Below, one piece after another: positions 4,515 through 32,600 of a stretch of DNA of 64,000 bases (its first letter is position 1; each line of letters starts with the position of its first letter). Under the pieces are notes generated by a model that saw only the letters and a list, made by a program, of their open reading frames with translations, made no database searches and had not been told where the DNA came from. The DNA is from Phaeosaccion multiseriatum (taxonomy: Eukaryota > Protista > Ochrophyta, other classes). The translations under genes were made by a program, and so were the position numbers. Location of the stretch: NCBI GenBank assembly GCA_965112735.1, contig OZ218951.1:2232001-2296000 (forward strand). Direction: 5' to 3'.

Positions 4515-7500
4515 GCACTCACTCATTCACTTCCTCACTCCCTCCTCCGTCTCTCCCTCTTCCCTCCCTCTCTCCCTTCCTCCTTCCTCCCTCCCTCCCT
4601 TCCTTCCCTCCCTCCCGCCCTCCCTCCCTCCCTCCATCACTCACTCACTCACTCATTCACTCACTCACTCACTCACTCACTCACTCAATCACTCACTCAC
4701 TCACTCACACACTCACTCACTCACTCACTCACTCACTCACTCACTCACTCACTCACTCACTCATTCATTCACTCATTCACTCACTCACTCCCCTCTCTCC
4801 CTCCCTCCCCCCCCCCCTCCATCCCTCCCTCCCTCCCTCCCTCCCTCCCTCCCTCCCTCCCTCCCTCCCTCCCTCCCTCCCTCCCTCACCTACTCACCCA
4901 CTCCCCTCCCTCCCTTCCTCCCACCCTCCCTCCGTCACGCTTTTACTCCCTCAATCCCTCACTTCCTGGCAGACCTCCCTCACTCCCTCAGTCCCTCGCC
5001 CACCCAATCACTCCCGCACGCACGCACTCATTCTCACTCACGCACGCACGCACGCACCCAAGCCCTCACTCACTCCCCACCCTCACTACTCACCCCTCCC
5101 TCACTCACGCAGCACTCCATCCTTCCCTCACCCACCCCCTCACTCCCTCAGTCATCCCCCTCACTCCCTCACTCCGGCTCCATCCCCACTATAGGCCCAG
5201 AGGTGTCACTCACTCATTCACTCCCTCACTCCCTCCTCCGTCTCTCCCTCCCTCCCTCCCTCCCTCCCTCCATCCATCCCTCCCTCCCTCCCTCCCTCCC
5301 TCCCTCCCTCCCTCCCTCCCTCCCTCCCTCCCTCCCTCCCTCCCTCCCTCCCTCCCTCCCTCCCTCCCTCCCTCCCTCCCTCCCTCCCTCCCTCCCTCCC
5401 TCCCTCCCTCCCTCCCTCCCTCCCTCCCTCCCTCCCTCCCTCCCTCCCTCCCTCCCTCCCTCCCTCCCTCCCTCCCTCCCTCCCTCCCTCCCTCCCTCCC
5501 TCCCTCCCTCCCTCCCTCCCTCCCTCCCTCCCTCCCTCCCTCCCTCCCTCCCTCCCTCCCTCCCTCCCTCCCTCCCTCCCTCCCTCCCTCCCTCCCTCCC
5601 TCCCTCCCTCCCTCCCTCCCTCCCTCCCTCCCTCCCTCCCTCCCTCCCTCCCTCCCTCCCTCCCTCCCTCCCTCCCTCCCTCCCTCCCTCCCTCCCTCCC
5701 TCCCTCCCTCCCTCCCTCCCTCCCTCCCTCCCTCCCTCCCTCCCTCCCTCCCTCCCTCCCTCCCTCCCTCCCTCCCTCCCTCCCTCCCTCCCTCCCTCCC
5801 TCCCTCCCTCCCTCCCTCCCTCCCTCCCTCCCTCCCTCCCTCCCTCCCTCCCTCCCTCCCTCCCTCCCTCCCTCCCTCCCTCCCTCCCTCCCTCCCTCCC
5901 TCCCTCCCTCCCTCCCTCCCTCCCTCCCTCCCTCCCTCCCTCCCTCCCTCCCTCCCTCCCTCCCTCCCTCCCTCCCTCCCTCCCTCCCTCCCTCCCTCCC
6001 TCCCTCCCTCCCTCCCTCCCTCCCTCCCTCCCTCCCTCCCTCCCTCCCTCCCTCCCTCCCTCCCTCCCTCCCTCCCTCCCTCCCTCCCTCCCTCCCTCCC
6101 TCCCTCCCTCCCTCCCTCCCTCCCTCCCTCCCTCCCTCCCTCCCTCCCTCCCTCCCTCCCTCCCTCCCTCCCTCCCTCCCTCCCTCCCTCCCTCCCTCCC
6201 TCCCTCCCTCCCTCCCTCCCTCCCTCCCTCCCTCCCTCCCTCCCTCCCTCCCTCCCTCCCTCCCTCCCTCCCTCCCTCCCTCCCTCCCTCCCTCCCTCCC
6301 TCCCTCCCTCCCTCCCTCCCTCCCTCCCTCCCTCCCTCCCTCCCTCCCTCCCTCCCTCCCTCCCTCCCTCCCTCCCTCCCTCCCTCCCTCCCTCCCTCCC
6401 TCCCTCCCTCCCTCCCTCCCTCCCTCCCTCCCTCCCTCCCTCCCTCCCTCCCTCCCTCCCTCCCTCCCTCCCTCCCTCCCTCCCTCCCTCCCTCCCTCCC
6501 TCCCTCCCTCCCTCCCTCCCTCCCTCCCTCCCTCCCTCCCTCCCTCCCTCCCTCCCTCCCTCCCTCCCTCCCTCCCTCCCTCCCTCCCTCCCTCCCTCCC
6601 TCCCTCCCTCCCTCCCTCCCTCCCTCCCTCCCTCCCTCCCTCCCTCCCTCCCTCCCTCCCTCCCTCCCTCCCTCCCTCCCTCCCTCCCTCCCTCCCTCCC
6701 TCCCTCCCTCCCTCCCTCCCTCCCTCCCTCCCTCCCTCCCTCCCTCCCTCCCTCCCTCCCTCCCTCCCTCCCTCCCTCCCTCCCTCCCTCCCTCCCTCCC
6801 TCCCTCCCTCCCTCCCTCCCTCCCTCCCTCCCTCCCTCCCTCCCTCCCTCCCTCCCTCCCTCCCTCCCTCCCTCCCTCCCTCCCTCCCTCCCTCCCTCCC
6901 TCCCTCCCTCCCTCCCTCCCTCCCTCCCTCCCTCCCTCCCTCCCTCCCTCCCTCCCTCCCTCCCTCCCTCCCTCCCTCCCTCCCTCCCTCCCTCCCTCCC
7001 TCCCTCCCTCCCTCCCTCCCTCCCTCCCTCCCTCCCTCCCTCCCTCCCTCCCTCCCTCCCTCCCTCCCGCCCTCCCTCCCTCCCTCCCTCCCTCCCTCCC
7101 TCCCTCCCTCCCTCCCTCCCTCCCTCCCTCCCTCCCTCCCTCCCTCCCTCCCTCCCTCCGAGGGAGGGAGGGTTCGGAAAGAGAGATGGAAGCACTGGCA
7201 AGCGTAGACGGAAGGAGAGCCGGGAGACGGGAAAAAGGCTTGGTGAAAAACCGAGTAAATTACTTACGGAGGAAAGATCTCCTGCTGTGAAAAGACTATC
7301 GCACGTGAAGAGTCCGACACGTGCGCACTATGACCACGTGGAGCCTATGGGCAGACAGAGCTCAGTAGCTTTATACCCATCGCACCCCTATCATACGGAA
7401 TGCTCTGAGTAGATTACACTTTTTTTTTCTCACACACACACACTATGATACCTACCTCCCTCCCTCCCTCCCTCCCTCCCTCCCTCCCTCCCTCCCTCCC

Positions 7501-18274: not shown

Positions 18275-19150
18275 GTATACATGTAGGTGGCTTTTGTGGA
18301 CCATCCCTTTTGTTGTATCACCACCTTACCAACAATCTGGCAACAATCTGGCAATCTGGCTCTTGTTTCTTGTTCCTTACGAGGAGGAAGGAGACTACGT
18401 CGTCTTGTAGACTTGTGACTTGTGCGTCACCAGCTTGCTACAGTTGATGGCTTTAAAAATTGTAGTTGTTGTTGTATTAGGAGAGGGGAGTGCGAGGGAG
18501 GGGAGGGGTGGTTCGGGGTTGGGTGGGGTGGACCGGTCGCACATTCGACACAGTCTCACGCCAAACGTACATACATATACATACACACTCAGCTGTACAC
18601 TATTTTATAAACCAATTCAAAAATATGTTTTAAAAAATAACTTGTGGTTCCCTTGCCGCAAGTAAGCAAAAAAGCACCCCATCGAGACACACCCACGATC
18701 CTCGTGGTTCCGATGCCGTATGTAAGTAAGTAAGTAAGCAAGCAAGAGTCCATTGAGACATTGAGACACGACCCCACAAGGCAAAGCAAAAATCCACACA
18801 GTCCACGCAAGCCCCTCATGAGTCACATGCAACGCACAAGCACGGGTACCACACGGGCAAATTCGTCTCTCCCCACCCCTCCTCTCTATCTTTCTTCCTG
18901 AAACCATTTGACACAAAGAGGCCTTTCCTTTCCCTTCTGTCCCCTCTCCTTTTGGTCCATCTTCCCTTCGGCTGCTCAACTCCACGTTGAAACGCTTCCT
19001 CCCTCCCTCCCGCCCTCCCTCCCTCCGCTCCTGTCCAGTCATGTCAGCGCTTCACTCCTCAGCTCTTCAAGCGCTTCAAGCGTTTCCGCTCAAGCTCAGG
19101 CTAAGCTCAGACTGAAACTTAAACTCAAGCTCAGGCTCAGACACAGAGGC

Positions 19151-21418
19151 TCAACTGAAGCCCCACCAGCGCTCCGTTCCCTCCATGCAAGAAATGCCGA
19201 TTTTGTCCTTGAACGTCGTGAGGAAAGACACGAGGTCGGGCTCCCCCTCCAACGCCAACGGCACCGCAAAGGGCCCTACTTGCTTCACTAACTCCCCCTC
19301 CTTCGTCCACGGACCTGCTGTCTGCCCCAGCACTCGGCCGATCTCTCGCACAAGAGCCTCTCTTGCCTTATCTCGCTTCATAGCCTCAATCGCCCCTTGC
19401 TGCCTCTCCTTCTCTGCGGCCTCTGCCTCTCTCTTGGCGAGGGCGGCTGCGGCAGCGGCGGCGGCGGCTTCCTCGGGGGTAGGGGGCACGACGCGTCCCT
19501 TCCTTCCTCCTCCTCCTCTCCCTCCATCTCCGCCTTGTCCTCTCCCCACCATGCCCCCCCCTCCTGCTTCAGCAGCGTTACCACCGCTATTGGTAGCCCT
19601 CTCTTCACCGCCACCTGCCCCTGCTGTAGAGCCGCCCAACGTCGGGAAGGCCGCTTCGTTCGCATCGTACGTCCAGGACACAATCTTCCCTCCACGTCGT
19701 GTCATCCTCACGCCTGCCACGGCACAGGCACCATTATACACACACACACCAACGAGGAGCGCAGCAGGGCGACAATTACAAGGTGTTACAAACCACACGA
19801 CACACGACACACGACACATGACACCACAGAACCCCCCTTTCCGACGATTTCACCGCCCCCCACTCACCCTCCGTCCTCCCTTCCTCTCATCTCCCGTCCC
19901 TCACTTATCCACCCACCACCCACTACTATACTGCCATGCTCCCACGAACCACCCCGGTAAGTCATCATCCACACGTCGTTTCGCCCCTCTCCTCCATCCT
20001 CACCGGCACTCTCTTGCAGCAGCTGGCGATCCGCGTCGCTGGCAGGGAAGGAAACGCCTGTCTTTGCCTTGACGAGGCTCTGCAGCTTCGTCTCAGGCAC
20101 TGCCCCACCCAAGTGCATCAGCACATCCACGCCAATCTCAGCGCAATCTTCCAACTGCGCCTTCGTCCGTGGCACATCACTTCCTCCTCCTCCTCCTCCT
20201 CCTCGAGTCTGAAGCCCCGCGGCGGCTTTGGTTCCTCCTCCTCTTGTCTTGGGTGGAGGCGCTGCTGCCGAAGATGCCACCGCTGCTTTCTTCTTCAGGG
20301 CAGCCCTACTAAGCTTGGGCTCGGGCAACGCACACACCCCCACTCCTACCCCCACCGACACCCCTCCTCCTCCTCCACCACCACCACCCCCCCCGCCCCC
20401 TCCTCCTCCTCCTCCTCCTCCTCCTACGCCACCACCACCACCCCCACCAGCTCCTCCATCCGCTGCACCGATGCGGTACTTCTTCTTCTTGGGCATCTTG
20501 ATGCACCCCCCAACGTGATTCACCGCGAACATCCCCACACTCTGACGACTCCCAAATAACATCTCGAGGGTCTCTGGGCTGGGATCAAAGCCCACCACCG
20601 CCTCCACCTTACTCTGCAGCGCCTTCTCCTCCGCCCACTTCTTTGCCCCCTTGCCGCCACCGCCAATCATATCCGCCGCTCCCATCTCCCACAGCGCCTC
20701 CTCAATCGCTCGTTTGAGATTGTCTCGGTGCAAATCTGCGTCATTCGGGTCGAGCACATGATACACCACCCCCCGGCCCGCCTGTGCAGCAGACTGCTTC
20801 CCTTGCGAACTGCACATGATGCCGGGAATGCTCTTGATGAACTTGTGCACGTTCTTGTGTGCTGCATTGCTAATGATCGAAACTGTCGCGTTGGTCAAAG
20901 GTAGCCCCACCCAATCGCGAAACTCCGGCGCCAATTCCTTCTCCGTCTGTCCTCCCCTCGCCGTAATGGCCCCCACAATCACTCCCCGGGCCCTGTTCTC
21001 CGCCTCCTGAGCACTACTCTCCAGCGCCCATAGCCCGCCGGAGAAGGCCTTGACATCCGGTAAGCTCTGCAGAAATTGCTTGGAGAGCACCGCATCCCAG
21101 TTGGTCGTGCCCCCTCCCCCTCCACCACCACCCGCCGAGGCCTCTTGCCCTTGCAGCGCTTTCTTCATGTCCTGCAAAGTCATGAAGCCTCCGCTGTCCT
21201 GCAGAATCATGAGCACTTGTCGAGCCTTCTCATTGTTGCCCCTTCCTCCTCCTCCTCCTCCTCCTCCTCCTCCTCCTCCTCCTCCTCCTCCTCCTCCTCG
21301 TGCTGCTGTCTTCCCACTGGACATGCTCCCAGCAAGGGCGTCCATCTCCGCAACTCCTCCATTGTGTCCCTCATACCCGCCGTTGCTGTAGCCGTTCCTA
21401 CCACAGCCAAGACCATTC

Positions 21419-21457
<39 letters not shown>

Positions 21458-22860
21458 TGCCCATATGACTGCTGCTGCAGTCCATATGACTGCTGCTGCT
21501 GCCCATATGGCTGCTGCTGCTGCTCGTGTTGCTGCTGCTGGCGAGAGTCGCCCCCCCCTCTTCCACCCCTCACGTCCCTGGCGTCTTGCCGTCCCCCAAA
21601 TGGAACCGCTCCACCGCCTCCGCCACCCTGCTGCTGCCCATATTGCTGCTGCTGCTGCTGCTGCTGCTGCCGCCTACCCTTTGGTTGCTGTTGCTGCTGA
21701 TACTGATTTTCGCCACCACCTCCCCTGCCGCCTCTAATATTGGACTGCTGTCGCCCATGCTGCTGCCCTTGCTGCTGCTGCTGTCCATATGACTGCTGTT
21801 GCCCGTGACCTCTTCCTCCGCCACCGAAGCATTCGCTTTCGCTTTCGTTGTCGAACCTCCCTCGCCCCGCGCGCCCGCCTTCCTGCCCATATGACTGCTG
21901 CTGGCCAAAGCCAAACGCCCCCCTTCCTCCTCCCTGAGACTGGTACCCTCCCTGCTGCCCTCCATGTTGCCCTCCCTGTTGCTGCTGCTGCTGGCCATAC
22001 GAGCTCTGAGGCGGCGCTTGCTGTCGGACGTTTCGGAAATCCCCCCCGTTCGCTGCCACCCCCCCCCAGTCTCCTCCTCCTCCTCCTCCTCCTCCTCCTC
22101 CTCCTCCTCCTCCTCCTCCTCCTCCTCCTCCTCCTCCTCGTCCTCCTCCTTCTCCTCCCTGCACCTTTTGACCCCTCGGCCAAATCTTCCTCGGGGCGGG
22201 CGGCTTGTAGGCAATGCTCTCCTCCTCCCCTTCCTCCCCACCGCCATTAACTCTACCCTCCTCCTCTTTCCGTAACGCCTCCAGCTCCTCGTCCCGCAGC
22301 CTCGCCGTCTCTTGATCGAGCTCGGCGTCCGTAAAGCCAAAGAGCTTCTGCAGCATCTTCACCAGCGAGGCCTGTGGCTCCATGGTCTCTTCCAACCTAA
22401 CGCACTCCCTATCGAAGCGCTTGGCGCCCTCCATCTTCTCTCCACTGAGGCTGTGTGGCAGCAGCGCGGTGCGCACGGTAATCCCGAAGGTCATGAGCGC
22501 CAACGCGAGCCAGTTCTCACCAGGGGGAAGCACGGTGATGCCCTCGGCCTTGGCGCCTCCTTTCTCAAGATCAAGCATGTTTCCGGCGACGGCGTACAAA
22601 ATCTCGGACTGGTGTGATTGAAGATATATATATATATATATATCGCGCAAAAGAGGGAGGGGGCGGGAGAAGCACACGGAACATTGGGCAGAGAATGGAT
22701 GGCATACAAAGCATATTGAGGCACAAGAAGGGGGGGGGGGGGGCACGAAAGAGAGAGAGAGGGTACATAAAATACACGTTCAAAAACCAAACCGAACGCT
22801 TCAGCTCGCTGCCAAGTACCTCGGGGACAGGCAAACAAACAAAGAACCGAAGTCATGATG

Positions 22861-23045: not shown

Positions 23046-24319
23046 GAGGCGCAGGTCTCGAAGAGTACTGTCCGACGCAAGCGAATTTAATTATCTTCCC
23101 CCTCCGCTCTTCCCACTTTCACATTGAAAAAACCCCTCCCCTCCTTTTACACATTGAAGAAAAAAAAACTCTCTCCTCTTTTTCCATTGATAAAAGCACC
23201 TCCTCTCCTTTTATCACATCGAAAAAAAGCCCCTCTCCTCCTCTTTCACACTACGTACAGCTCCTCCCCTCCCCTCCCCTCCCCTCCCCTCCTCTTCCAC
23301 GCATCGTACCTTGTTCTGATGAATGGCGGCGGCCGCCAGAGAGTTCCTGGGCATGTACACAGTCCCACCACGCTCCGATATAGGCGAGCAGGCCCACTGC
23401 GGCACGGGCACACTCAGCTTGATGTTTAAGGTGCCCTTGCCGCGGTCCAGGCGGTCTGAGGGAGGGAGAGGAGGGGGGAGGGAGGGAGGGAGGGAGGGAG
23501 GGAGGGAGGGAGGGAGGGAGGGAGGGAGGGAGGGAGGGAGGGAGGGAGGGAGGAGCTTAGGTATTACGGGTGTGCTCCAAAGTAAGTACAAAGGAAGAAG
23601 GAAGGAGTTAAGAGAGAAATAAGAAGGAGAAGAAGGGGAGCAGACAAAAGACACTCACGCAAAAACAAACCCAAAAACACACACACACACACACGCCGAC
23701 ACGCACACGCACACGCACACACAGCATCCATCCCTTCATTCCTTCCTTCGCTCCCTCACCTGCCCACAGATGGAACATCCTGTCCCTGTTCCCCGAGGCC
23801 ATCTGCCCCACGATTCGAGCTCCGAGGGGAATGTCATCCACCAGCGGAGTGCCCCTCCACAGAGGACCATCTGAGCCCTTCACCCCACCACCCCCACGGA
23901 GTCCTTTCTTCCCTCCTCCTCCGCTGCCCTGGGGGTTGAGTATGGCCCCTTCGGGAAGGGCGTCCGCAGGGAAGACGAGCTGCTGCTTGTTGTCGCCCTT
24001 CTGCACGTGAATCTCATTAGCATGCACACCCAACAGGTGCCCGAGTTGGTTCTGGTTGGCAGGGATGCCCGACAGCACGGCGTTCATGTCGGATGGGTTG
24101 ACAATCACACCAATGGCAGAGCTCAGCACGTCCAGCAGCACCTACAGGGTAAGTAAGGGTAAGTAAGACAGGGCAGTTTTCAGTTGTCAGTTGTCAGTTT
24201 ATGTCACCTTATCAATATCGAACACCATAAATGGAATCGATATTAGGGGGGGACACGGTGAGGAGGAGCAGACTGTGGTTTGATGGATCGAGCGAGCCGT
24301 CTATAATCATATACACACC

Positions 24320-24367
<48 letters not shown>

Positions 24368-27300
24368 GAGGAGTGGTAGCGGGACGCACGTGAACTCCCC
24401 AAAACACCCCCAGCTCACCTTCATGGACTCCCTCTTACGCTTGGTGGAGCTCGTCACCAGCTCCACTATCACCTCTGGCGGCGGTCGAGGCGCCATACTG
24501 CTGCTGCCCCTCCTGTTGCTCCCGCTCACCTCCGCCTCCGCACCACCACCACCAGCCGCCGGCGCCGCCGCTGTTGCTGCCTTGGCAAGCTCATTCTTCT
24601 TCTGCTGCACCACAATGGGTCCAAAGATCTCCAGCAGCACGTCCTCAGCAGCAGGGAAGGAGCTCTGGCGTATCCACACGCGGATCTTCTCCGTGTCTGA
24701 CACGAGCCGGTAGATGAGCCACGCCACACACACCGAGTCCGCAACGGCTTCACGCAGACCCTAGTGGAGCAGTGGCGTGGGGGTTATTTGGGAGGGGGGA
24801 GGGGTTGGAGGGCGGGGGGGGGTGAGTGGGTGAGCGCGTGAGTGAGTGAATAGGTGAGTGGGTGAGTGAGTGCAAAGGGCGGGGAAGGTAGGGGCAGGGA
24901 CGGGAGGTGAAGCACTTCGTGTACCCCCCCCACCCCCCCCACCCCCCCATCCTCCATCCTCACTCTCCCCTTCCACTCTACTTCCCACACTCCCTCCTCA
25001 CTCTCCCCTCCCACTCACTCTACTTCCCTCACTGCCCTTCCCTCACTCCCTCCTCACTCTCCCCTCCCACTCACTCTACTTCCCTCACTGCCCTTCCCCT
25101 CACTCCCTCCTCACTCTCCCCTCCCAATCTACTTCCCATACTCCCTCCTCACTCTCCCCTCCCACTCACTCTACTTCCCCCACTGCCCTTCCCCTCACAC
25201 CTCACTCTGCCCTCACTGACGCATTGAACCAAAACTCACTGTCCTATGAACCAAAAACTCAAACTCTTACTACGAAGCATGACTTAATTGTATGAATCAA
25301 AAACTCTAGTGACTTGAGAACTAAAAACTCACCCCTGCTAGCTGCTCCTCCCCCACACGGCACATCCCTCGGGCGGTGCAGTTGCTCCGAAGACCACTGT
25401 CGAAGGAGAAGGGCACAGAGGGGGGGAACACACTCTCCATGTACGCGGCAGGCACCATGTCGCGGGTGAGGCTCGTTAAGGTTACTTTGAGGCCGCCCCC
25501 CTGAGACACACCACCGGCCTGAGGGGAGACAGGCAGGGAGGGAAGGAGGGAGCGAGGGAGGGGGCGAAGGGGTGAGGGGGTGAGTGGAAGTAGAGTGGAT
25601 TCTTTCCTCCAAATCAAAAGGTGGTCCGCGTCTCTCTACATCTCGCCCTCCCCGACAGACAGTAGCCCAGACACTCCCCACACTCTCCCTATATATACCC
25701 CCGATCTCCTACCCTCCACCGCATACCCCATGTTTATGATATATACCCAGTACCTCATACCGCATACCCCATGTTTATGATATATACCCAGTACCTCATA
25801 CCGCATACCCCATGTTTATGATATATATACCCAGTACCTCATACCGCATACCCCATGTTTATGATATATACCCAGTACCTCATACCGCATACCCCATGTT
25901 TATGATATATATACCCAGTACCTCATACCGCATACCCCATGTTTATGATATATACCCAGTACCTCAAACCGCATACCCCATGTTTATGATATATACCCAG
26001 TACCTCATACCGCATACCCCATGTTCATGATATATACCCAGTACCTCATACCGCATACCCCATGTTCATGATATATACCCAGTACCTCAAACCGCATACC
26101 CCATGTTTATGATATATACCCAGTGCCTCATACCGCATACCCGATGTTCATGATATATACCCAGTACCTCATACCGCATACCCCATGTTCATGATATATA
26201 CCCAGTACCTCAAACCGCATACCCCATGTTTATGATATATACCCAGTACCTCATACCGCATACCATGTTCATGATATATACCCAGTACCTTGTCCTTGAG
26301 CTTCTGCTTGCCCGTGGGGCGGCAGAGCATGAGCTGATCTTTAAAGGTCCACACGAGGAGGAGGCGCATCAAGTTGAGCTTGGCAGGGGGCATTCGGGAT
26401 GGGTCGTGGAGGATACGCGGTGTCGGGACCCCAAGCAAGCCTGCCACTCGTTGGGCCAGGTGTCGGGAGGTGCTGCTCAGCTGATAGGGGACCATATACA
26501 GAAAACAGAGCGACGGGGGGGGGGGGGGGAGGTTGGTGAGGGTGTGAGGGTGGACAGAGAGAGAGAGAGAGAGAGAGAGAAGCAGGGGTTGAAGTGTTAG
26601 AGTGGAGTATGGGAGGTAACAGGCCTGCACTTTTCACAACCACCACCCCAACCAACCAACCAACCATTGCTAAAGAAGGAGGCATACCGGCCCCCTCCTC
26701 CTTCCATCCCACCCTCCCCTTCTTCCCTCCCACCCTCCCCTCCTTCCCACCCTCCCCTCCTTCCCACCCTCCCCTCCTTCCCTCCCACCCTCTCCTCCCT
26801 CCCACCCTCCCCTCCTTCCCTCCCACCCTCCCCTTCTTCCCTCCCACCCTCTCCTCCCTCCCACCCTCCCCTTCTTCCCTCCCACCCTCTCCTCCTTCCC
26901 ACCCTCCCCTCCTTCCCTCCCACCCTCCCCTCCTTCCCTCCCACCCTCCCCTCCTTCCCTCCCACCCTCTCCTCGCTCCAACCCTCCCCTCCTTTCCCCC
27001 CCTTCCCTCACCTGGCGCATGCGTGAGTGTGCGAGGGCGTGTGCCTTCATGAAGCTATCCCTGTGCTTTTCCGCCAGGTTATTATAGGCAAAGAGCAGCC
27101 GCATCAGCATGATGGGCTCGGAGTACACCCCTCCGTCGAACTTGGCCTGCCCCACCATGGTCTTGGCCACAATACCATTGTACTCATCAGGATCGTCGTG
27201 AATCAACGGAGAAGTCACTCGAAAGGGCGTACGTGGCAAGGACAACGCCGCTGCCATGACAATGGCCTCTGCAATGACGCCCATCTGTGCTCCCAAGCCA

Positions 27301-29629
27301 ATCATCCTCCCCAGCAGCAAGTCCACCCCGAGCGAGGCGACAAAGGTTCCCATCACCGTCATGTCTCCGTCGTCGTCGGCTTGACTAATAAAGCCCGACT
27401 CATGCAGGGAAGCAAAGGCCCGTCCCATGTGCTCCATCTCCGGCGGCTCGATGACGTCAAGCAACACAGGTACCACCTTGGTGTCAAGCATGCTCTTGAG
27501 CCCTAGAATCACTGCATCCAATGGTTGCCGGTGCATCTCCCCTTCCTCAAACTCCGGCATGTGGGTGTCAAACAGCTCCCTCGAGTACAGCCGATACGCC
27601 GACCCTGGTCGTGTTCTTCCGGTCCTGCCTGCCCGCTGCGTTGCCGAAGCACGCGAAACCCATGTGGCCGCGAGCTGAGCCCGGTGGGTCAAAGGGTTGT
27701 ACTGCAGCTGCTTCTCCGTCCCCAGGCACACCACATGGTCCACGTCGGGGAGCGTTACTGAGGATTCCGCGGCGTTGGTTGCGATGATAATCTTAACCTC
27801 ATCCTGATCAGGGCGGGAGGGAGGGAGGGAGGGAGAGAGGCAGGGAGAGACGAGGCATGCTTAGGCTACGGCCGTGGGGTCGGATGGGATGGGAGATGAT
27901 GGGGGACATCAACGTGGTAAGTCCACACACACACGCAAACACACTCACTCACTCACACACTCACACACTCACACAAACATACACACACACACGCACACAC
28001 GCACCCACCCATGGACATGACGTACCGGTGCTCCAGGCTTGAATGCCTCCATCTGCTCCTCGAAGGGAATGTCTCCATGAATGGCAAGGCACTTGTACGT
28101 CACTCTTGTAGAGCGCACCTCCTCAAACTTGGAGGTTATCTCCACGATGTCACCCATTCCAGACACAAAGATGAGCACCGCCGAGCCGGGCTTGCCCACC
28201 GTCCTCGCCACCTGCACAGCAAGGGTGTATTGGAGGGCGTTGCTGCGGGTGGAGGGGGGCCCACCTCCTCCAGTCATTTGTGCAAGCTTGTCGGCGTCGT
28301 CGCCAACCCGATGGGGCAGCTGCAGCGCACTGCGAAGGTCCTCCGCAAAGTATGTGTCAATGGGAAAGCGACGCACCCCAACAAAGAGGGGCGGCTCCGG
28401 CACACCAAAGTACTGCTGATACATGGCCGCTGCAATGGTTGCGGACATCAAAATGAGCTTGATGCGGGGGTTGGTGGCCAGTAGCCTCCGTGCCATGAGG
28501 CACAAGATGTCCGTGTCCACACTCCGCTCGTGTACCTCGTCGATGATAAGGTGCGTGTGCTTGTCAAATGTCTCGGGGTGGTGTGCCATGAGTCGCACCA
28601 AATACCCCGTGGTCACGAACCAAATGCGCGTCTGTGGCGACTCCTCACGCATGCCGTGCCCCATGCGGTACCCCACCAGCTTGTCGTAGCCCGGCATGCT
28701 CTTGACACGGTCCATGAGGGCCCGTACGGCGATGCGTCTCGGCTGACTCACAAACATGCGCGTGTTGGGTACAGCGTCATAGATGATGAGCGGTACTCGG
28801 CTGCTCTTGCCGCACCCCGTCTCTCCGTGGATGATGGTCACCCGATGCTTGTCAACGTGCTCCAGAATGCGATCCCTGTGCTGATCAATGGGGAGAAGCG
28901 TCGTGTCCGCTGCTCTGTCCCACATTTCCTCATCCTCCACCTCCTCCTCCTCCACCTCCGCCTCCTCCGGCTCCTCTCCGTCGTTCCACGCCTCATTCTT
29001 CTGCTTGAGAAGAGCGGCGGTGGTGGAGTCCTTAGCCTTTGTTGCCTTTGTTGCCGACTTGGTAGTGGGCGAGGTGCTCGCATTCCGCCCCACCCGAGGG
29101 CTCGCTTGCTTCTTCCCAATCTCGTCCTGGGCCAGAAGGTCCTCGTACCACACCTCCTGATCGCTGTCGCCCGCCTCCACCTCCGCCTCTGCTTCCTCCC
29201 CCCCGTCCACCTCTCCTCCTCCCTCGCCGCCGCTGCTCAGCAGGAGGTCTATCTTCTTCGCCCCATCCCCCTTCCCTTTCCCTTCCCCCGTAGCAGCAGC
29301 AGCAGCAGCAGCCCCCGCCGCTAGCTTATGGAAGGTAGCACCATCGTACCAGTCCTTCGGCGAACCCTCTAGCAGGGGAACGACACTCTCCGAGCCTTCC
29401 TCACCGCCCTCCTGGCTCCGTCTCGCCTTGCCCCACAGCTTCGATAGCGTCCTCTGATAAGCGTAGGACACGCACACACCCGTCCAGGTGGGCAGGGGCA
29501 GCGACGCATCCTCCTCGAGGCGGGCCCCCCTGGCCATGGCGAGTAGCGCCTGCTCCTGTCCGTCCGTCAGCTCATTGCCGGCCAGCTTCATGCAGCGCAC
29601 AGCAGCAAGGCCGGGAAGGCCCTCGTCCT

Positions 29630-29661
<32 letters not shown>

Positions 29662-32600
29662 CGGGTAGACAGGTAGACAGGTAGACAGGTAGACAGGTAG
29701 GTAGACAGGCGGGTAGGTGGGCAGGCAGGAGGAGGGAAGGATGAGGACCAAACAGGAGAGGCGTAAGTGAATGGTATATACGAAGATGAGACGCGAAACA
29801 AACATTGATCGTGGCGTGCGTGCGTGCGTACGTATATGTGTGAGTGGGTGTGTGCGAGCATGAATGTGCACGAGGCAAGTCTGCCCCGTCTCTCCAATCG
29901 AGCTGGAGCTCACACTAACTAACCTGAGGTAGCACCGCCAAATCGGCACTGTTCTTGTTCAGAAAGTGCACCTCGGGGGCTCCGGAGCCCTTTTCGGACT
30001 CCTCGTCCAGAGGAAAGTCTGTGAGGAAGAGGAAGGGCGGGGGGTTGCGAGAGATGGGGTAGGTATAGAGCAGGGTGCTAAGAAGGGGCGAGCTCCCAGC
30101 TCTACACCTCTCTGCCCTCTAAAGAGGCCTCTCACGAAAGGAAAGGAAATCGTGCGTGCGGGAAGAGACGGAGAGGGCGTGGAGGGGGGGGGACTGAAGA
30201 GCGGATTGGCATCTCCGACCCCCCACCCTTTCAGGCAGACACACGGCAAGCCCCAGACAGAGACAGAGAGGCGATGATGGAAGCGTGTGTGTGCAGCTAA
30301 CAGCTAGCAGCTAGCAAAGTGGATCAGAAGAGGAGTAGAAATGATTAGCGGTTGGCACGGTGGTGTGTCTCCTTACCTTCCAGTGACTCCAGCCCATAGA
30401 GAGCCCGGCAGAACAGCAGAGCCATTGCCGTTTCGTCTGCCTCGCTCGCCCTGATTTTGGTGTTGGTTGATGGGAAAAGATTTCAAGCAAGCACGGAGAC
30501 AACAAGTAGAGGGTGAGCGAGCGTACGGAGCGGGAGTACAGATGATGGAGGAAGCTTCACCCCCATAGTCCCTCCTTCCCTCCTTCCAATCCCACCCTAG
30601 ACAGTCATCACAGACATCTCTCTTTGACGAACAAGGAGATTTCATTTGTCCCCGCCCCTCGTCCACTCCTCACTCACGAAGTATTGGCCACAAGCTGAAA
30701 GTCGGGCTCCTGTCCCCTGACCCACTCCAGCGTCTCCTTCGGCTTGCGCTCTCCGCGAATGAACTTGCTCAGCAGCATCAGCTTCTTTCCTCCTCCTCCT
30801 CCTCCTCCTCCTCCTCCTCCTCCTCCTCCTCCTCCTCCTCCTCCTCCTCCTCCTCCTCCTCCTCCTCCTTCACCTCCTCCTCCTCCTTCTCCTCCCTCCT
30901 GCGCGCCCCCCTGGCCTCCCTCGCCCCCATCCTCCCCGCTCTTATCCTCCATATCCTCCTGCTCCACAGCAAAGGCGCTAGTGGGCAGGTGACTCGTGTA
31001 GTCCGTGCCTATTAGAATGGCCCATTCGACCAACGCCGACTCGGAAAGCCCTACCGCCTTGGCCAGCGTCGTCCTATCCCACACGCGTGCCGAGGGTGCC
31101 TGCCCCTCCGTCAGCTCGAGCTCGTCGAAACGGATGTAACGACATTTGGCAAACATGTGGAAGTCGGAGTCATTGCCCAGCACGAAGGACCGCCCCTCGG
31201 GGTCTGAGGCACTCTCTTTGGCGATATCTGTGGCAAGCAAGGAGGGAGGGAGGGAGGGGGAGGGGGAGGGAGTGAGTGAGTGAGTGAGGGAGGAAGGGGG
31301 GGGGGAGGGGGGGAGGGAGAGAGGGAGAGAGGGAGGGAGAGAGAGAGGGAAGGAGGGAGGGAAGGAAGGAAGGAAGGAAGGAAGGAAGGAAGGAAGGAAG
31401 GAAGGAGGGAGGGAGGGAGGGAGGGAGGGAATGAGGGAGGGAAGGAGGGAGGGAGGGAGGGAGAGAGAGAGGGAGAGAGAGGGGAAGGAAGGAGGGAGGG
31501 CCGGGACGAAAGTGATCGCCACACAAACGTGTGAGAGATTGGGAGAGCAGGTGCGGTTCCGGGGGGGTGCGTGTAGGACAACAGAGTCGTGTTGATCCTC
31601 CTGCTCGCGGCTCCAACACCCGCATGACAGTGAGCCGAGGTGCCAGCATTGTGCTACTACCAGCACCCTGCTCCTGCTGTCCTCCTCTTCCTTCTCTCAT
31701 CCTGCCTCTCCTTCCCCCCCTCCCTCACCCCCACCCCGAAAGGAAGGTCTGCTGAAGTCCCTTGACTTACTTACCCTGGTCAGCCTCTCCTTCGCACTGC
31801 ACGCACTCCACGCCGAGCTGCTCCATCGTCACTCTCATCTGGGTGGTGGTAAGTGCCGGTGCCGGAAACCGAAGCCCCTCCGGGGGTCTGGCCCCATCTA
31901 GGCACCACCCGTGCAGTGCATCCCACTGCTCCCTCTGGCGCTCCTTCCTGGCCTTTTGGCACGCGGTCTTGAGCTGTCGATCACTCCCGTCCCAGTACGT
32001 GATGGGTTCGATGCCGGCTGTGACAGGGATGTTTGTTGTGTTGGTTTTGTTTTGTGTGAGAAGAAATGGTGTGTGTACGAGAGTCCCCCTCACAAGAAGA
32101 AAGAATCCAATCCAAATACAGCGAGGCCGAGCCGTGGTCGGACGCAGATGGAAAATTCAGAGGAATCGGCGGGGTGTTGAGGGCGGTGTGTGTTGATGCG
32201 GGAGGAACATACAGCAGAGGGGGACATCAGACCATTTCACTCTCCCCACTTCGGTCTGATCTGTCCGCCAGTCCGTCGGTACGCGTGAGTGCCTCACCTT
32301 CTCGCAGGAGTCTGATGGTTCTCGTTGCCATGGCATGCACTCTCTCAAAGTCTCCACCGAGATCGCTTCGCACCTCACCACCGCCACTGCCCCCGCCGCC
32401 ACCTGCTTTCGATGGAGCTCCCTCCTCTGCTGCTTGCTCTGGCTCCGGTGCTGGCGCCACAATGACATTGTCCCTTTCCATACAGGCGTGGGCCCACCCC
32501 GACCCATCTATGAGCAGTCGGTCTCCCTTCCTAAGGTCTGTTGTGTGTATCGAGAGGGAGCGGGTGACCAAATGCCGGCCACGGAGAGTGAGAAAAAAAT

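Follow-up and report, generated by a model that had tools for sequence, protein, structure and literature searches.

Most of what is known about LOTUS domains comes from proteins of animal germ granules and from proteins with a NYN nuclease, and the known partnerships between LOTUS domains and helicases are formed in trans, by Oskar, TDRD5 or TDRD7 with Vasa. Vasa binding requires a C-terminal extension, helix α5, whose presence defines the extended LOTUS type (eLOTUS) (PMC5458760), while minimal LOTUS domains from bacteria, plants and animals bind G-rich or G-quadruplex (G4) RNA, with tandem arrays proposed to raise avidity (PMC7498356). In MARF1 (Limkain-b1), six to eight tandem LOTUS domains share one polypeptide with a NYN nuclease and an RRM, and tethering of the protein to RNA or to partners has been proposed as the role of the array (PMC6217404, PMC6168497, PMC7498356). 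A 2010 survey of OST-HTH architectures recorded many fusions, none of them to a helicase (PMC2848206), and our full-text search of the literature likewise found no description of a LOTUS-DEAH/DExH fusion in the papers searched. Here we describe such an arrangement in a photosynthetic stramenopile, Phaeosaccion multiseriatum, where an array of LOTUS-shaped domains, at least two and possibly five, lies in cis on a DEVH helicase with a nuclease domain. The gene is on the minus strand of contig OZ218951.1 (assembly GCA_965112735.1), within a 64,000-nt stretch analyzed as a whole (positions 2,232,001 to 2,296,000; hereafter the window), and all coordinates below are those of the window unless another contig is named.

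The candidate domains form five ordered islands in the tail of the gene, held by two minus-strand frames, one of 960 codons (19864-22746) and one of 222 codons (19151-19819). At positions 19100-20327 and 20459-21232 the window agrees fully with short-read DNA contigs of one sample (four runs), and its sequence can be taken as sound there. The window itself is eukaryotic in character, with introns, microsatellites and long low-complexity runs.

Islands 1 and 2 can be tied to a second gene. The closest ortholog with genomic context, 60% identical, lies on a 12.6-kb metagenome contig (L002), and its tail carries four clear tandem repeats of ~75 residues each (R1-R4) in the same place as the islands. 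The repeats have in common a motif that runs helix, GG, M-x-L, helix, G-F-x-L, short helix, F-L-x-x-I-P-G-V, hairpin. Islands 1b-2 are collinear with R3b-R4 (BLASTP E = 1e-5), and islands 1b-2-3 are collinear with R1b-R2-R3a at a weak BLASTP score (E = 0.012). A hidden Markov model (HMM) built from the L002 repeats only ranked the tail frame first of 971 six-frame fragments of the window (E = 1e-4), with its best domain match on island 2 (independent E-value 0.015) and a weak match on island 1. Judged by this collinearity and by the top rank of the L002-only profile, islands 1 and 2 are real, conserved domains homologous to the L002 repeats. The L002 repeats (4854-6099 of that contig) are themselves a duplicated pair, R1 resembling R3 and R2 resembling R4, and R1 and R3 each contain a short intron at the same position, between an extra helix and helix 3.

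The repeat family folds, in the best available model, as a LOTUS-like winged helix. From a six-row alignment (A4, comprising R4, R2, island 2, island 1, R1a and R3a), AlphaFold2 modeled R4 with a mean predicted local distance difference test score (pLDDT) of 78.8 and a predicted TM-score (pTM) of 0.65, the five models ranging from 70.8 to 78.8. The elements are a helix at residues 4-15, a strand at 19-21, helices at 22-33, 39-46 and 53-59, and strands at 63-66 and 69-72, giving the topology α1-β1-α2-(α2')-α3-β2-β3; the three helices and beta-hairpin wing of a winged helix-turn-helix are thus present in the order α1-β1-α2-α3-β2-β3. In an exhaustive comparison of this model with 48,161 PDB representatives, the first six places went to LOTUS entries: TDRD7 (3rco; Z 9.2, root-mean-square deviation (rmsd) 1.8 Å over 68 residues), Tejas (8wxs; Z 9.1), TDRD5 (3s93; Z 8.7), LOTUS 2/3 of TDRD7 (2ly2; Z 8.1), Oskar (5cd8; Z 7.4, rmsd 2.8 Å) and MARF1 (5yad; Z 7.3), followed by assorted winged helices at Z of at most 6.6. 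The fold comparison that the original prediction had proposed as a check therefore came out in its favor, with the model of an L002 repeat standing for the family.

Within this fold, the domains resemble minimal LOTUS domains, not extended ones, by the α5 distinction (PMC5458760), because the eLOTUS C-terminal helix is missing from the model and the sequences. There is no conserved amphipathic helix after the wing; what follows β3 in the R4 model is no more than a 5-residue helix of lower confidence, and the domains abut each other or low-complexity sequence.

Islands 1-3 adjoin directly and occupy residues ~503-762 of the long frame (nt 20464-21240). Island 1 (21019-21240, minus strand) is a LOTUS-type winged-helix domain by its place as a row of A4 and its weak match to the L002-only HMM; its C-terminal helix and wing align with the L002 repeats, and it carries an insertion of eight glycines at the place of the short extra helix that separates α2 from α3 in the ortholog. 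Island 2 (20743-21003, minus strand), also a row of A4 and the island that aligns with R4, is a LOTUS-type domain with an insertion of ~12 residues within the beta-hairpin wing. Island 3 (20464-20742, minus strand) is a candidate by pattern, with a Gly/Lys insertion following helix 1. Island 4 starts at residue ~857 of the long frame, and island 5 (19154-19393, minus strand), a further candidate by pattern, forms the final ~80 residues before the stop codon at 19151-19153. All five islands thus lie in open frames on the minus strand, near where they had been predicted, although the range given for the fourth (20160-19680) includes a predicted intron. The expectation of Gly/Ala-rich linkers between them held for islands 3 and 4 and for islands 4 and 5, which are separated by glycine runs, but not for islands 1, 2 and 3, which are joined by short non-Gly linkers and have their glycine runs inside islands 1 and 3.

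The predicted intron (19714-20003, minus strand; 290 nt, phase 1) splits island 4 into a first exon part with helix 1, GG, a strand and helices 2-3 (20004-20178, minus strand) and a putative second part (19655-19713, minus strand) that reads V-R-M-T-R-R-G-G-K-I-V-S-W-T-Y, the expected beta-hairpin wing. The last base of the first part is the first base of a Gly codon; a GTGAGG donor follows directly after base 20004 and is identical to the donor following the HA2 exon of the same gene, and the CAG acceptor ends at 19714, so that splicing keeps the Gly codon. The predicted splice would place a wing-like hairpin directly after the last helix of island 4, where the repeat family has one. Unspliced, the long frame reaches a stop at 19864-19866, and island 5 therefore belongs to the protein only if the intron is removed.

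Upstream in the same gene, the helicase and its surroundings were recovered across several exons. A DEVH-box helicase with HA2 exons spans 26670-29897 (minus strand), as indicated by Pfam matches and homologs: the core (27969-29897, minus strand) matches Pfam DEAD (8.7e-10), the HA2 exon (26670-27743, minus strand) matches HA2_C at 17.6 bits, under the cut-off of that family, and the exon translation contains the Walker A motif GETGCGKS and a DEVH motif, its homologs carrying DEAD and Helicase_C. Together with the RecA core and HA2, these features place it in the DEAH/RHA group. More than 1500 homologs of the core were found, with identity reaching 61%; in many of them XPG_I or XPG_I_2 accompanies DEAD and Helicase_C, and those that bear names come from diatoms, Triparma and brown algae, under the source labels DHX29, DHX57 or HrpA-like. 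The most similar homolog (P0002; 61% identity, 788 residues, on a 3-kb contig) has, in its precomputed Pfam list, an RRM (PF00076) between DEAD and Helicase_C, another RNA-binding addition. Exons upstream of the helicase (30674-32571, minus strand) encode a PIN/XPG-I-like domain with a weak XPG_I match (E = 0.012).

The link between helicase and islands runs through a conserved post-helicase region (22336-22611, minus strand). It lies in the same open reading frame (ORF) as islands 1-3 and the first part of island 4, and corresponds to residues 46-137 of that frame, which are 45% identical (E = 7e-20) to the post-helicase region of L002. On the L002 contig, a single ORF covers both the XPG-I-like (PIN) domain and the helicase, and the next, overlapping ORF encodes the post-helicase region running into the first repeat. 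Because one ORF holds both the post-helicase region and the islands, and because this collinearity is kept in orthologs, the reading frames place the islands in cis with the DEVH helicase, a basis of frames and synteny rather than transcripts; the fusion to a helicase that had been proposed is accordingly upheld, with a helicase of DEVH type.

Between the post-helicase region and island 1, a low-complexity region of ~320 residues (21241-22209, minus strand) is rich in Gly, Gln and RGG; it includes several RGG/RGGRGGG motifs as well as long runs of poly-Gly and poly-Gln. RGG boxes are known binders of G4 RNA. The region is absent from L002, where the spacer is roughly 90 residues. Elsewhere in the gene, (TA)n microsatellites, seen as IYIYIY in translation, occur within putative introns at ~22600-22640 and ~24300-24350.

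A number of results weigh against a LOTUS assignment, most of them from sequence searches. Against Pfam, including the OST-HTH models that had been put forward as a check, no family was found for any island, for islands 1-3 together or for the L002 repeats, even at E ≤ 10, and a six-frame search of the whole genome with PF12872 returned no match, the same model being positive in 57 of 151 Bacteroidota genomes. When the islands and two profiles were searched against PDB sequences, no LOTUS match resulted, and hhalign of A4 against 31 bacterial OST-HTH domains returned a probability of 0.4%, equal to column-shuffled controls, from a comparison set that was bacterial only where the structural neighbors are animal LOTUS domains. 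The five islands are not detectably similar to one another (pairwise local scores within shuffles, best z = 2.6), the confident model is that of an L002 repeat and not of a window island, and the A4 alignment behind it has only six rows from two genes. Single-sequence AlphaFold2 of islands 1-3 reached a pLDDT of 40 and was unusable; in a fold search that model gave mixed, middling rows, with generic winged helices at Z 4.3-5.7 for island 1, and it was not used as evidence. The silence of the OST-HTH tests would suit generic winged helices that have converged on the LOTUS shape and make protein-protein or DNA contacts, as in cullin WHB, forkhead or histone H1, instead of contacts with RNA. The first Foldseek match of the R4 model is indeed a viral DNA-binding winged helix (2co5, E 0.02) in a list whose E-values are all weak (0.02-0.3), and many such folds reach Z 5.5-6.6 in the exhaustive comparison. 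We nevertheless consider convergence unlikely. Measured against the best other fold, the six LOTUS entries are ahead by 0.7 to 2.6 Z-units, and they also superpose with lower rmsd (1.8-2.1 Å in all but Oskar) and show higher structure-based identity (15-21%, against 4-13% for most, though not all, generic winged helices). TDRD7 has the best Foldseek TM-score (0.65/0.68), and Oskar, TDRD7, MARF1 and Egalitarian fill much of that list. In the ESM-Atlas shape search an OST-HTH cluster came first (TM 0.72), with bacterial NYN+OST-HTH and plant OST-HTH/OHA clusters also present; leads from ESM-Atlas features were all below 0.9, and the named ones were all winged helices (OST-HTH, the Egalitarian winged-helix domain (WHD), MARF1_LOTUS and the eIF2D WHD). 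The combination of nuclease, RNA helicase and RGG-rich sequence is also that of RNA proteins, and LOTUS proteins typically carry their domains in tandem arrays (PMC7498356). A reading of the repeats as EF-hand-like helix-loop-helix pairs has next to no chance of being right: the only PDB sequence matches of the family profile are myosin regulatory light chains (over helix 1, loop and helix 2), but their E-values (0.13-0.84) are not significant, the loop lacks a calcium-ligand pattern, the AlphaFold2 model contains a sheet of three strands with a beta-hairpin wing, and the structural matches include no EF-hand. We rejected it on the topology of that model. The proposal of LOTUS/OST-HTH-like winged helices thus holds for the fold of the family to which islands 1 and 2 belong, with LOTUS domains as its nearest PDB structures, while sequence profiles stayed silent.

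How many of the islands share this fold is a separate matter, and the claim of five tandem copies did not stand as made, since only islands 1 and 2 match the family profile. Compared with A4 by hhalign, islands 3, 4 (first exon part) and 5 gave P-values of 0.099, 0.17 and 0.074, none significant. Such values, and pairwise similarities no better than shuffled sequence, would be expected if only islands 1 and 2 were folded and the remainder were amphipathic helices in a disordered, fast-evolving low-complexity tail, with island 5 perhaps untranslated should the intron not be real; the hhalign register of island 5 would make it a truncated domain and differs from that of the original prediction, and ESM features gave no usable match for it. 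In addition, the sequencing runs that hold the locus are DNA contigs spanning the intron, which is predicted from sequence, and expression of the tail is likewise putative. Speaking the other way, the repeats of the ortholog number four, not two; the alignments of islands 3 and 4 with A4 keep the expected register (helix 1, GG, strand, helix 2); and the predicted splice, whose donor matches another donor in the gene, restores a wing-like hairpin in island 4. We therefore treat a two-domain tail as a serious contender, if a somewhat doubtful one. Among the individual islands, the fourth is probably a LOTUS-type domain, the third is slightly favored to be one, and for the fifth the chances appear evenly balanced. 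A different question is what the domains do to the helicase. [quoted passage not shown] The partnership of eLOTUS with Vasa has been documented (PMC5458760), the three best structural matches (TDRD7, Tejas and TDRD5) are eLOTUS proteins that bind Vasa, and fusion in a single polypeptide would ease such regulation. Vasa binding, however, needs the α5 extension, which is confined to animals (PMC7498356) and missing from the islands, and the algal helicase is of DEVH/RHA type, not DEAD-box; on these two counts we judge stimulation in cis quite improbable.

We instead favor a reading in which the gene encodes one large RNA-processing protein whose C-terminal LOTUS-type array probably acts as a multivalent RNA-binding or tethering module. 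The predicted protein would consist of an N-terminal PIN/XPG-I-like nuclease, a DEVH helicase of DHX29/36/57-like type with HA2, the post-helicase region, the Gly/Gln/RGG-rich disordered stretch and the winged-helix array. By analogy with MARF1, whose array would do the same for its NYN nuclease, the array may anchor the nuclease-helicase on RNA that is structured or rich in G, or hold it in ribonucleoprotein granules, and the ~320-residue RGG/Gln/Gly-rich stretch may add RNA affinity or promote condensation. The architecture and the type of fold are shown by the gene, its ortholog and the R4 model; from the literature on LOTUS domains we infer the function, including any binding of G4 RNA.

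The expectation that the surrounding sequence would be full of (GGGA)n and (GGA)n tracts was borne out for the window, which holds 17 (GGGA)n and 34 (GGA)n tracts of at least four units. Counting both strands, potential quadruplex motifs number 254, ~4-fold the 66 ± 5 seen in composition-matched shuffles, with 188 on the minus and 66 on the plus strand. This abundance is context and not evidence of binding. In the intron after the HA2 exon (26716-27007, minus strand), twelve potential G-quadruplex motifs lie back to back on the sense strand, in a GGGAGG-type repeat that starts at the GTGAGG donor. A more ambitious model would make the protein a 'MARF1 plus helicase' in one polypeptide, in which the LOTUS array recognizes G-quadruplex or G-rich transcripts, the DEVH helicase unwinds them and the PIN-like nuclease cuts, with the LOTUS domains perhaps regulating the helicase in cis. 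We hold this full scheme to be rather unlikely; if true, such a protein would have evolved in an alga with a genome crowded by (GGA)n/(GGGA)n tracts, and, with cis-regulation, a LOTUS-helicase partnership would be known for the first time beyond animal germlines. Should the domains bind RNA, the gene would offer a compact model for coupling RNA recognition, unwinding and cleavage, as well as a handle on algal RNA surveillance or silencing, about which little is known.

The array appears to be narrowly distributed. Diatom, Triparma and brown-algal orthologs have the same nuclease-helicase-post-helicase backbone, with cores 45-55% identical, but the repeat profile had no match in the DNA retrieved for seven other orthologous loci (four diatom-like, one designated L008, one from Triparma and one from Pylaiella). 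The array, detected solely in this genome and the metagenomic ortholog, thus appears to have been added to a more ancient PIN-helicase backbone within a restricted lineage. Searches for further relatives of the repeats brought up no others: a word-indexed protein search with the tail region and the L002 repeats returned only the queries themselves, as did a search of the genome itself for island paralogs; a metagenome scan with a single protein found none; and exhaustive phmmer of islands 1-3 against 1.84 billion protein representatives gave no genuine relative. The sole phmmer match was rejected as a Gly-run artefact in a repeat protein. LOTUS-type domains that are visible only by fold escape such searches, and their distribution may therefore be underestimated. 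In the diatom-like orthologs the C-terminus is formed by a different conserved domain of ~170-200 residues, with the motifs LPSTNIL ... WLERQF ... RHWY and no Pfam match (L003 8623-9234; L004 15476-15991; L007 8702-9307; L009 13970-14539). The start of this domain, a helix-GG-helix in L004, matches the repeat profile very weakly.

Compared with known systems, the algal protein combines features that otherwise occur apart. Like DHX29, DHX57 and DHX36, the last a G4-resolving helicase (PMC12621225), its helicase has a DEVH motif, a RecA core and HA2; unlike them, it belongs to a stramenopile PIN-helicase fusion, and in the papers searched neither LOTUS nor PIN domains are known on those three. 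With the minimal LOTUS domains of TDRD5, TDRD7, Tejas, Oskar and MARF1, the islands share the order α1-β1-α2-α3-β2-β3 and an arrangement in tandem in a protein of RNA metabolism, and they lack α5, as minimal LOTUS domains do. They differ in having no Pfam or profile match, in the short extra helix between α2 and α3 of the L002 repeats and the Gly8 run at that place in island 1, and in their fusion to a helicase and a PIN-like nuclease. The closest parallel in architecture is MARF1, which likewise joins a PIN-superfamily nuclease and a C-terminal array of minimal-LOTUS type in one polypeptide. The two are not orthologs, however: the algal nuclease is XPG-I/Asteroid-like and not NYN, a DEVH helicase stands between nuclease and array, and a long RGG/Gln-rich region is present. 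The array is thus a very divergent variant of a known domain, set in a new architecture.

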